From NCBI GenBank assembly GCA_037447605.1, contig CM074810.1:1708880-1772879 (forward strand): a DNA stretch of 64,000 nt, in the 5' to 3' direction. The notes under the pieces are model-generated. The model had not been told where the DNA came from, searched no databases, and saw only the letters and a list, made by a program, of their open reading frames with translations. The stretch is from Zygnema circumcarinatum SAG 698-1b (taxonomy: Eukaryota; Plantae; Zygnematophyceae). Positions 13,876 through 44,995 of this stretch are shown in pieces. A program made the position numbers and the translations under genes. The number at the start of each line of letters is the position of its first letter. The stretch's first letter is position 1.

Positions 13876-16800
13876 CTAAAAATAAGTCGCCACCTCCTTC
13901 CACAAAGTCGGAAGGGAGAGCACATTTTCCTCCGTATATCGCGCCTTGACCTGCCCCGGCTCATATATAAACTCTTGGGGAATTTCAGAGCTTTTGGGCC
14001 CAAAGGCCTGCGCTATTGTGAAGCGGAGGGCGCCTTGTACGGGAAGGGCCGGCGGCGCATACTGGTTCGATTCCAGGCCCAATTTCGTAACATCGTCGCC
14101 GTAAAATTCCGCAAAATCATCGACGACGAATCCGACGGCTCCGTCAGAAAACGCAAACGGCCCCGCGCCACTTTTACCGCCGATCGTGACAACTGTCACG
14201 TTGTGGAGCTGCCGCATTTGGTAGCTAAAGAGGGCGCAGGTGGAGAAGCAGAGGCCGTTAGAGAGGATGATGATTTTCGTGGAATCGAAAAGTGGCGCTG
14301 TGGGGAGATCTATATAGTAAGAATTTTGGAGAAATTCGAATAAGTCAGTAAGTTTGAAGAGGGCGGAGTAGGGTTCAGTGTGGTTGTTATAAGTTCGGTT
14401 TGTGAGGGGAAGGAAGAAGTCGGAGGATGAATTGAAGGGTTGGCCGTTCAGATCTTCATAGCTAGAGTAGGAATAGTCGGAAGCTGTGTCCTTGAGGGCA
14501 GATGCTTCGCTGTACGCCTTTTGAGCAAAGAGATTCGCTTTGAATTGGGAGGCGAAGCCGGGGTAGCCTGAAGTAGGGAAGAAGAGCTGAGTAAGGAAAG
14601 CTGCCGTGGCTGCATACCCGCCTCCATTGTTGCTGAGATCGATGATCAGCTGAGAAGCTCCGGAGTTGCTGAAGGAAGGAGGAGAGGGCAAAAAAAAGGG
14701 AAGGAAAAAAAAGGAAACGAAACGAGAAGGATATATGAGGTAGACAGATAGAGAGATTGAGTTCAAATGGCAGAAATGGAAGTCACAGCATCAAAAGGGA
14801 GTGGAAGAAGTCAGTAATGCCCAAGGATCTTAAAGTGAGGAGATAGGGTCAGGATCCAGAGTGGAGGAGGGAAGGGAAAAGCAAAGGACACGAAGAATTT
14901 GAGTTCGAAGGAGAATTTTAAAGAAGGAGAATTCGGAAAGCAGTGAAAAGGGAGACATTCTGAGAGAGATGGGAGGAGAGAAAGGGGGGGAGTGGGAGTG
15001 TGAGCAAATGGGGCTACAAATGTGTGAGGTAGGGGCAAGAAGAGAAATGGAAGAAAGAGGTTTGAGTTTAAAGAGAAGTAAACAGAATATCCGACAGGAT
15101 TGAGCGACTTCTGAAAACTGGCCAAAAAAAAGCGGACGAGAGAGAGAGAGAGAGCGAGAGAGAGAGAGAGAGAGAGAGAGAGAGAGAGAGAGAGAGAGAG
15201 AGAGAGAGAGAGAGAGAGAGAGAGAGAGAGAGAGAGAGACAGAGAGAGAGAGAGAAACATTGGGAATGAGAGGGAGGCAGCACAGAAGAAAATTATTGCA
15301 GAAAGGGAGACGGAGATAGACTCGGGAGCGAGGAATTCAAGAGTGAGAGTGGGAGGAGGGTACTAACGCGAGAGTACTGTATCCTGTCAGGAGCTCATCC
15401 GCGAAATCCAGTTCAGTGCTCCCTGCTGACTGGTTGTCTGTCGGTTTGCCTGTAAAGTCCGGAATGGTCATCACTGCAGTTTTTTGGTCCTCCAATAGCA
15501 CGACCTAGCCGCCACCCCAAAAAAAAATAAAAACCAAAACAACAAGGGAAGCAATAACGGAAAATATAAACTAGTCAAGAAAGGAAAAGGAGAAGACAAG
15601 TCCCGCTCGCTCTCCTCCCCCTCCCTTCGCCCCTCCGCCTCTCCTCCCCTCCCCTCAAATCTCCCCTCTCCTCCGCTTCCCCTCCCTCCCTCCTTCCTCC
15701 CTCTCCTTCCTCCTCTCCTCCCTCCCTCCTCCCCTACCTCTCCGCCTTCCCTTTTCCCCTCCCTCCCTCCCTCCCCTCCTTCCTCTCCTCCCCCCCTTCG
15801 CCCCTCCCTTTGCCCTTTCCCCCTTCCCCCTTCCCTCCCCTTCGCCCCTCCCTCCTTCCCTCCCCTCAACCCCCTCCTCCCTTTGCCCCTCCACCCCTCC
15901 CTTTCTCCCTCCCTCCCTTCGCCCTTCCCCCCCTTCGCCCCTCTCTCCCTCCTTCCCTCACCTGAACGAAGTCAGACGTGTTAGACAGCCGCTGATAGGG
16001 CTGTGTGGTTTCCTCCATAGTGGTATACATCTCCGGCCTGCCACGTGGCGAGCGCAGAGGGCGCTCCCGAGGAGTGTTGTACGGAGAGCGGCGCCCGCGA
16101 GCATCGAGAGAAGCGCTCCCTGTGCTTGCAGCGGTTGCTGCGCAGTTCAGTTCGTAAAACTGAGAACTGTCGTTGAAGTTATCGCCCACGTATATGACAA
16201 GATATGGAACTTCAAATGTCTCTGATGTGGTGGAAGTCTTCCTGCAAATGTACGACAATGGAAAATGTCAACATCACGTCGTAGTACAGTAGGACCCCAT
16301 CATATTTTCCACCTGGTTTTAGCAAATATCCGGCGAAAATATTGTTTTTGGCAAGGTCCGTGTTACCAATAGGTGAGCGGAATTATGTTAGAGTTCATGT
16401 ATGTCCGTACGTATCGCATCGTATCGTTTGCTGTCATATCGCTATTACAACTCGTACGGCTAGTACGGAAAGTACCGTATCGGATCGTATCGCATCGTGC
16501 CATATCGTATCGAAGCCAAGAAGAAGGGGGGAAGAGTGAGCGCCTCTTACGGCGGCACGTGTGGGGAGAGTAGGTGAAGTTTTGCGTAAGCCTGTGACGG
16601 CTAGTACAGCTAGTACGGCTAGTACGGCTAACACAAAGTTACTGTACAAAAAAGTGGTTTCGGCAAAATTGGTGCGAATTTATTGGTGACGCACTTTTGG
16701 AGGGGAAAATATGATGGGGTCCTACTGTACTTGTGGCATGCATGAATCGGAAAATGCATGCTTGTGTAGACATGCATGATTGCATGGGTTCACAAGTACT

Positions 16801-44500: not shown

Positions 44501-44995
44501 CTTCACAACGCTTGCCTTCGTTGTTGAATCGTACACTTGAACCATCGGGAACGGTGTGAAGACATACGCACTTCCCTCGTAGCAATTCGATATCCACTTG
44601 GTGTGGCCGTCATTCAAGCTGCCAATTGTTTTCGTGAGGTCACGATGAAACTGAAAATCGTTCACATATGTGGTCTTTTGAATTCGCAGAAGTTCATATC
44701 GGAGCCGAGTTCGACTGTAGAGCCGTTGATCCGGAGCTTTGATCGCCAGATTTGTGTACGGATAAATGTTGACCAACATCTTCCAGACGGTGTTCAAGGT
44801 GGATTTGGCTTGCTCGGAGTTATAGGGAAATGATTTGAGGCATTCATTGTAATCCGAGTAAGGCTGATACGCATAGTAACCAACGTATTCGCACGGGTCC
44901 GAACCGTACTCGTACTGCGCAGCCATCTTCGGCAATCCAGCACTCAACAGTAGGAGAGCTCCAAAGACAATGTGAATGACAGGCGGCAGGCCCAT
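41571..44995 (-). CDS. Secreted CPAF-like/fungal-type S41 peptidase, paralog D; exons 44995-44485, 44268-43962, 43508-43205, 42835-42711, 42354-41571
   Basis: MGLPPVIHIVFGALLLLSAGLPKMAAQ, DPC, LNDGHTKW, GAEVEEIDG, TAVLTIPDF, LIIDLSNNLGGY, MLLSNGLCYSSCAAF, PQEFVYVPG. Intron 1 uses a GC donor. Exons 3 and 4 were read manually and are not in the ORF track. Confidence 0.87.

Follow-up and report, generated by a model that had tools for sequence, protein, structure and literature searches.

We analysed a stretch of 64,000 nucleotides from the streptophyte alga Zygnema circumcarinatum SAG 698-1b (contig CM074810.1 of assembly GCA_037447605.1, positions 1,708,880 to 1,772,879), which we call the window and within which all coordinates are counted from its first letter. 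Clustered in tandem within it are four old paralogous genes for a eukaryotic S41 serine peptidase of the fungal type, named G1 to G4 in the following. Our reading as a whole is that these genes encode secreted enzymes with a catalytic triad like that of the chlamydial protease CPAF, acting at the cell wall, in the mucilage or in the surrounding medium; we consider this reading likely. It makes for a well-supported addition to a known, poorly studied protease family, i.e., a solid annotation rather than a surprise.

Four clustered genes of the S41 family

Both the open reading frame (ORF) listing and a six-frame reading of the window reveal four multi-exon S41 genes, whose orientations (-, -, +, -) agree with those given in an earlier, model-made description of the same DNA (the initial annotation). 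Five colinear coding blocks per gene are found at 13.9-19.6 kb (-), 30.0-33.0 kb (-), 37.1-40.2 kb (+) and 41.6-45.0 kb (-). We built gene models using the intron-less homologous transcript P0001 as a guide along with a mutual comparison of the four copies. The respective models have open frames with 0 internal stops; their products comprise 665+ (G1), 686 (G2), 711 (G3) and 684 (G4) amino acids and show pairwise identities of 43-59%.

G1 spans 13876-19481+ on the reverse strand, with exons at 19481-19001, 18870-18564, 17880-17601, 17143-17007 and 14668-13876. On the same strand, G2 covers 29971-33007 (exons 33007-32470, 32175-31887, 31746-31467, 31167-31025, 30781-29971) and G4 covers 41571-45019 (exons 45019-44485, 44268-43962, 43508-43205, 42835-42711, 42354-41571). 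G3, the only copy on the forward strand, spans 37147-40174; a predicted mini-exon with the ATG (37147-37172) is followed by exons 37241-37773, 37948-38254, 38384-38708, 39003-39139 and 39367-40174.

Four introns are common to all copies, i.e., they share codon positions and phases (1, 2, 0, 0). All splice sites are of the GT-AG type except for intron 1 of G4 (GC-AG), where the donor reads GCAAGC at 44484-44479; GT is present at the same position in the three paralogues. The last G3 intron consists of a tandem array of C/T-rich 24/33-nt units (39149-39364), which reads as a proline-rich peptide.

The 5' ends differ in how clearly they can be placed. The start codon of G4 is at 45019, which corrects the value of 44995 from the initial annotation. 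In G3, the leader of the large exon has no in-frame ATG. Judged from sequence, the predicted 26-nt exon (donor GTAATG, acceptor CAG at 37238-37240) would supply one, giving the protein start MGQ as in P0001. The first large exon of G1 opens at an acceptor around 19537 in the same phase as that of G3 and has no in-frame ATG upstream; a sequence scan upstream of G1 for a start-codon mini-exon yielded no convincing candidate.

Gene structures of the same kind are found outside the window. P0001 is an intron-less ORF in seven Logan contigs (4 of them examined, one run each) and is colinear with the window exons. A genomic contig (L005:4063-6436, from SRR9302961) encodes an S41 homologue that is 40-48% identical and has the same four intron positions and phases. 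Its introns are much shorter (about 70-80 nt), and it adjoins genes with bZIP and HATPase_c domains. A second paralogue transcript (L006:1-2449, SRR8128907), which judging by accession numbers belongs to the run series of P0001, is split into ORFs of 431 and 372 amino acids, owing to a frameshift, an assembly error or the retention of a short intron.

The products of all four genes (4/4) carry the motifs DPC..C, LNDGHT, IIDLSNNxGG, NG[LM]C[FY]S[STA]C (C-x-S-x-C in short) and PQEF, that is, every motif named in the initial annotation recurs in each copy. The search with profile hidden Markov models (HMMs) that it had suggested finds both expected Pfam families. Peptidase_S41 (PF03572; MEROPS clan SK; cut-off 24 bits) is matched above its cut-off by the last exons of 3/4 genes, namely G3 (38.0 bits), G1 (29.3) and G2 (27.2). 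PDZ_CPAF_rel (PF23658; cut-off 27 bits) matches exon 2 of all four genes with E-values from 1e-10 to 5e-4, above its cut-off in 1/4 cases (G2, 42.1 bits; G1, 25.7 bits, E 1.2e-5; G3, 23.4 bits; G4, 20.4 bits, E 5e-4). The respective scores of P0001 are 26 bits (PF03572) and 32.3 bits (PF23658).

Variation among the proteins is greatest in the disordered linker, the product of exon 3, which nevertheless keeps a motif Y-x-x-P-x-E-x-P. In G1-G4 and P0001 it follows the pattern [P/H]Y-x-x-P-[R/W/H]-E-[R/Q/K]-P, with forms such as PYNTPRERP, HYHAPREQP and PYSIPWEKP. Its positions are 17723-17697 (G1), 31580-31554 (G2), 38583-38609 (G3) and 43330-43304 (G4).

With regard to secretory features, each product has 9-14 N-x-S/T sequons, and six Cys positions are conserved among the four. 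No hydrophobic 19-mer with a Kyte-Doolittle (KD) value >1.36 is found past residue 45 in G1-G4, nor is there an ER-retention tail (KDEL/HDEL) in any of them. The many N-glycosylation sites and the lack of a membrane anchor, both claimed initially, thus stand. The claim of a signal-peptide leader in all four copies has to be narrowed. It is clear for G2 and G4, where an ATG start is followed by a strongly hydrophobic (G2, KD over 19 residues 2.44) or hydrophobic (G4, 2.03) leader; it extends to G3 only via the predicted mini-exon, and the leader of G1 is weak.

The copies are old and constrained, because their synonymous divergence (dS) is at least 2 or saturated while the ratio of nonsynonymous to synonymous divergence (dN/dS), where computable, is 0.17-0.22. 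Transcription is seen for G3 and G4: 14 RNA-type runs of Zygnema contain 0.68-0.77 of the sampled words of 37200-40200, the region of G3, for which the exon fraction is 0.71. For the same locus, the share of words contained in DNA runs from at least three studies is 0.94-0.97.

Predicted fold and candidate catalytic residues

The structure model was computed for the homologue P0001 (678 amino acids) with an alignment of 22 sequences as input. P0001 is 43-52% identical to the window proteins overall (G2 is closest at 52%) and 50-62% identical over the last exon. Its model has a predicted local distance difference test score (pLDDT) of 84 and a predicted template modelling score (pTM) of 0.85, with residues 313-352 (pLDDT <50) as the only long low-confidence stretch within the mature protein.

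All top matches of this model in Foldseek and VIA-align searches are S41 proteins, with E-values down to 1e-14 and Z-scores up to 18.9. Among the Swiss-Prot models, Foldseek ranks the fungal peptidases PhomP1' (template modelling score, TM, 0.65/0.66) and PhomP1 (0.62/0.63) first, then UstP, and thereafter three chlamydial CPAF orthologues (TM 0.47-0.53); plastid and cyanobacterial CtpA reach TM 0.26-0.43 only, with plastid CtpA at 0.26-0.35. Among solved structures, VIA-align finds CPAF with Z 17.8-18.7 over 441-454 residues, which is the longest alignment of all, as well as the Bacteroides protein 4GHN (Z 18.9 over 365 residues) and chains of the CtpA/CtpB/Prc type (Z 12-14 over about 225-310 residues). 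The best match in the ESM Atlas is a Basidiomycota cluster (TM 0.84/0.87, root-mean-square deviation 2.9); Evosea and Preaxostyla clusters are listed there as well. A predicted S41 fold, proposed initially as a check, is hence what the P0001 model returns, with the fungal peptidases ahead of CPAF. Pfam domains and fold matches together bear out the long fungal/CPAF-type layout, as opposed to that of plastid CtpA. That is, the label "fungal-type, CPAF-like" is correct as a statement on architecture and, going by the model, on fold.

At the level of sequence, the family profile finds the S41 chains 3K50, CtpB and Prc in the PDB with E-values from 6e-8 to 3e-5, where only the oxyanion segment is matched and 3K50 is the best hit. 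A phmmer search of the PDB with the catalytic exon of G3 gave no match.

The candidate catalytic residues, which the initial annotation had described as intact, are H141, S557 and E647 (P0001 numbering). They are invariant in an alignment of five streptophyte homologues (A3), and the respective columns are likewise conserved in G1-G4. When sampled fungi are added, S557, C555, N432, G434 and G435 remain invariant; the Ser of C-x-S-x-C and the NNxGG motif are found in 22/22 aligned family members. In the P0001 model, S557 opens a helix (558-568). The candidate codons for His, Ser and Glu are located at 19121-19119, 14244-14242 and 13974-13972 in G1 (-), at 32590-32588, 30357-30355 and 30084-30082 in G2 (-), at 37653-37655, 39800-39802 and 40070-40072 in G3 (+), and at 44605-44603, 41939-41937 and 41675-41673 in G4 (-).

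No conserved Lys occurs within the 60 residues after the Ser among 14 family members (V and GG are the columns that do not vary in this stretch), so the Ser/Lys dyad of CtpA and Tsp is not available. Concerning CPAF, the offsets of His (LNDGHT) and Glu (PQEF) in the VIA-aligned ranges come to within a few residues of His105 and Glu558, as estimated by arithmetic from the alignment ends. Those two residue numbers reportedly go back to Huang et al. 2008. The PDB title "cpaf s499a mutant" names residue 499 of CPAF. The same arithmetic fails to map the algal Ser onto CPAF, owing to insertions. A profile of the Ser region gave only insignificant matches in the PDB, one of which (8VCB) places the Ser on the Ser of S-x-S-A in 8VCB. 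From these patterns we infer that peptide cleavage relies on a CPAF-like Ser/His/Glu triad and not on a dyad of Ser and Lys as in CtpA and Tsp.

The following picture of the enzyme would result. An N-terminal signal peptide (clear for two genes, predicted for one) would direct the product into the secretory pathway, and the mature protein would be a soluble, disulfide-bonded and N-glycosylated enzyme of about 650 residues. Its N-terminal helical domain is expected to supply the His (LNDGHT), and substrates or tails are likely bound by the CPAF-like PDZ domain. The variable, presumably disordered linker with Y-x-x-P-x-E-x-P precedes the S41 catalytic domain, for which we propose the oxyanion motif within IIDLSNNxGG, the Ser of C-x-S-x-C at a helix start as nucleophile, and the Glu of PQEF as acidic member. 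By analogy to CPAF, activation may be brought about by cleavage in the linker. Speculatively, the linker motif could be a candidate processing or auto-inhibitory site, comparable to the internal inhibitory segment of CPAF. The hypothesis of a CPAF-like triad in the algal S41 proteins is clear and testable, and with this family, the CPAF-type variant of S41 catalysis (Ser/His/Glu) could be studied in a eukaryote that is not a pathogen.

Several observations weigh against this reading. The fold was predicted for the homologue P0001 and not for a window protein, and the family profile fails to reach CPAF in the PDB by sequence (E > 10). The last exon of G4 scores 20.9 bits for PF03572 (E 2.9e-4), i.e., below the cut-off of 24, and the internal ATG of G1 at 19481 gives a weak leader only. 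Furthermore, the splice junctions and the first exon of G3 are predictions from sequence rather than from reads. For G4, RNA-type runs contain 0.77-0.90 of the words although exons make up 0.59; they thus include intron sequence as well, and the word shares show transcription but not clean splicing.

Place of action, relatives and origin

Given a passage through the secretory pathway, the likeliest place of action would be the cell wall, the mucilage or the surrounding medium, with protein turnover or peptide processing as the putative task. The family is a candidate component of the zygnematophyte secretome. The same enzymes might instead stay inside the endomembrane system, i.e., serve as housekeeping or processing proteases in a vacuole or lytic compartment or in secretory vesicles. 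Signal peptide, sequons and disulfides suit any destination of the secretory pathway, plants route many soluble proteases to the vacuole, and a papain-family protease gene is present in the same window. Neither end of the proteins, however, shows an obvious vacuolar sorting motif or an ER-retention tail, and the closest fungal relatives are built like secreted proteins. Neither point is decisive, and we regard an endomembrane role as unlikely.

A maturation function in a ribosomal peptide natural-product pathway, as known for UstP and PhomP1 in fungal dikaritin clusters, is suggested by the best named structural matches being PhomP1', PhomP1 and UstP. The fungal family, however, is far larger than its few cluster-linked members. 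In addition, no UstYa/DUF3328 oxidase, tyrosinase or repeat-bearing precursor gene is found among the about 20 window ORFs scanned, and the neighbours are instead an aquaporin and a papain-type protease. We therefore deem such a role very improbable. The same low credence applies to the idea that the products are non-catalytic binding proteins which keep the S41 fold, like the modules of vertebrate IRBP. Such modules are indeed among the structural matches (Z 12-14), but Ser, His, Glu and NNxGG are invariant across streptophyte sequences that are 25-60% identical, which is hard to explain without catalysis. A secreted, active peptidase remains our preferred reading.

To collect relatives, an exhaustive HMMER search of 1.84 billion cluster representatives was done with a profile of the four catalytic exons. 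It returned 1,180 relatives at E <= 0.001, eight of them at E <= 1e-30. The near matches stem from Mesotaenium endlicherianum (two proteins), Netrium digitus, Closterium spp. (four), a EukProt transcriptome (P0004) and Logan contigs; the products of the window itself are not among the proteins returned by the searches. Homologous-protein searches with the whole of P0001, with the A3 profile and with residues 420-678 of P0001 gave 3-6 proteins each and missed the Mesotaenium and Closterium relatives. Further matches belong to Dikarya (Mycena, Peniophora, Serendipita, Xylaria, Ramaria), and those listed as early-diverging fungi are Dentiscutata, Linnemannia, Entomortierella, Piptocephalis, Basidiobolus and Blyttiomyces. 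Naegleria is among the matches, too. With Naegleria, Evosea and Preaxostyla, the fold family reaches beyond fungi.

The novelty in green plants that the initial annotation had implied was overstated, since homologues, unnamed and uncharacterised, are already present in public proteome predictions for Mesotaenium endlicherianum, Closterium spp. and Netrium digitus. We found no paper describing the family in streptophyte algae in a literature search in which DOIs drown out the term "S41". Neither the preprint on the Zygnema genome nor a fungal timetree paper mentions it. For Arabidopsis, the Swiss-Prot fold search gives S41 matches of the CtpA type only; other land plants were not exhaustively searched.

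Phylogenetic trees were computed with FastTree for 95 full-length sequences and with IQ-TREE (LG+G4) for 46 sequences. All streptophyte sequences form one group, with support 85 in the former and a Shimodaira-Hasegawa-like approximate likelihood ratio test (SH-aLRT) value of 95 in the latter. Within this group, G1-G4 join P0001 and P0004 in a clade (support 99-100), in which G1 pairs with G3 and G2 with P0001 while G4 stands separately. The cluster thus arose by old duplications, one or more of which are older either than the divergence from the organism of P0001 or than the spread of an additional paralogue. Three clades meet at one node of the IQ-TREE phylogeny, namely that of the streptophytes, one of Dikarya and one that unites early-diverging fungi with Naegleria. 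The algal genes are nested in no sampled fungal lineage, and the streptophyte clade is internally deep.

This topology excludes contamination and recent transfer; what remains is either an ancient transfer that preceded the radiation of the zygnematophytes, or vertical inheritance combined with widespread loss. One tentative scenario, which we consider possible without favouring it, is an ancient transfer to or from early terrestrial fungi in the ancestor of the Zygnematophyceae. It would have been followed by expansion into an arsenal of secreted surface proteases (e.g., for mucilage or wall remodelling, for conjugation or for defence against fungal or oomycete parasites), with the family lost from land plants or never present in them. 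If true, the family marks early contact between algae and fungi. A patchy distribution over fungi as well as streptophyte algae is discussed for several cell-wall enzymes (PMC9915684), and the S41 family is one more such case. That the S41 genes are fungal contamination or were acquired very recently from a fungus can practically be dismissed: the nearest named non-streptophyte relatives are fungal (24-29% identity), but the genes have host genes on either side within one scaffold and the same (CT)n-rich introns, the locus is present (0.94-0.97) in independent DNA runs from at least three studies, the intron positions recur in the copy of another organism (L005), and the deeply diverged streptophyte clade (SH-aLRT 95) is nested neither in Dikarya nor in early-diverging fungi.

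Neighbouring features and comparison with known systems

A papain-family cysteine protease gene at 3368-5423 (+) shows PF00112 matches on two exons, 3368-3751 and 5205-5423, and contains a 10-N gap (4207-4216). Between G1 and G2, a major intrinsic protein (MIP)/aquaporin gene is located at 22716-23803 (-), with PF00230 scores of 104 and 88 bits for two exons. Its GC content at third codon positions (GC3) is 0.71-0.77 compared to 0.54-0.58 for the S41 genes. A pentanucleotide array, (GCATG)x42, at 27010-27218 could be read as Met-Pro-Cys-His-Ala-like repeats in several frames; it is probably non-coding. The assembly gap at 27847-27856 falls into intergenic low-complexity DNA between the aquaporin gene and G2 and touches no S41 gene. 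It sits 2.1 kb past the 3' end of G2, where the nearest S41 exon ends at 29971, and a comparison of the gap edges found no flanking duplicate.

The situation is different for the last intron of G1. Here, 15192-16820 and 16831-18459 are exactly identical (1,629/1,629 bp); the copies flank a 10-N gap (16821-16830) and stop at its edges. As assembled, the repeat makes exons 3 and 4 appear once more within the last intron, whose length is 2,338 nt in this form and 699 nt once the repeat is collapsed. The frame of G1 is intact either way. The same pattern, i.e., exact duplicates ending at the gap edges, is seen at two further 10-N gaps, 9491-9500 (1,266 bp) and 54056-54065 (96 bp), where the duplicates span 8225-10766 and 53960-54161, respectively. 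Because of the perfect identity, the copies ending at the gap edges and the recurrence at two other gaps, the 1,629-bp repeat is probably an unmerged overlap of contig ends, and the segment 15192-16830 (copy plus gap) a probable assembly artefact. The exact duplicates around 10-N gaps look like a systematic effect of this kind, which would produce false (exon) duplications elsewhere in the Zygnema genome assembly.

A real tandem duplication, i.e., a G1 gene with exons 3-4 twice, is what the assembly shows as written. Besides the perfect identity and the position of the copy ends, which recur at the other gaps, the reading frame speaks against it: the phase at the end of exon 4 (0) does not fit that at the start of exon 3 (2), such that splicing in the extra pair would break the frame and exon skipping would be needed. 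We hence give a real duplication very little credence and treat G1 as a single set of exons.

Among known systems, the Bacteroides S41-like proteins 4GHN, 4L8K, 8VCB and 3K50 resemble the catalytic core of the algal proteins (Z 14.5-18.9). They differ by being bacterial, by about half the length and by the lack of the long N-terminal domain, and have no known function. Plastid and cyanobacterial CtpA, bacterial Tsp/Prc and CtpB share family S41 and the oxyanion segment LxxDLRxNxGG (profile E-values from 6e-8 to 1e-2). In contrast to the algal proteins, they use a Ser/Lys dyad, are shorter, differ in their N-terminal part and have the thylakoid lumen or the periplasm as their destination.

CPAF (CT_858 of Chlamydia trachomatis; PDB 3DOR, 3DJA, 3DPM, 3DPN) is the best full-length solved match, aligned over residues 67-678 of the P0001 model. 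The likeness covers the His-bearing N-domain, the PDZ-like domain and the S41 core. CPAF is, however, a bacterial protein delivered into the host cell, and the family profile detects no sequence similarity to it. It has an internal inhibitory segment and dimer-driven activation. Unlike CPAF, the algal proteins have a large insertion that separates the oxyanion motif from the Ser.

The closest likeness is to the fungal S41 peptidases with a CPAF-like PDZ domain, e.g., PhomP1 and PhomP1' (Diaporthe leptostromiformis), UstP (Aspergillus flavus) and many unnamed proteins from Basidiomycota, Ascomycota and Mucoromycota. Their identity to the algal proteins is only 19-29%, the algal sequences form a clade of their own, and the about 20 window ORFs scanned show no natural-product cluster context; most fungal members are uncharacterised. 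Nevertheless, they have the same length, the same domain order and both Pfam families, share the invariant C-x-S, NNxGG and DGH with the algal proteins and provide the best structural matches (TM 0.65 to 0.87).

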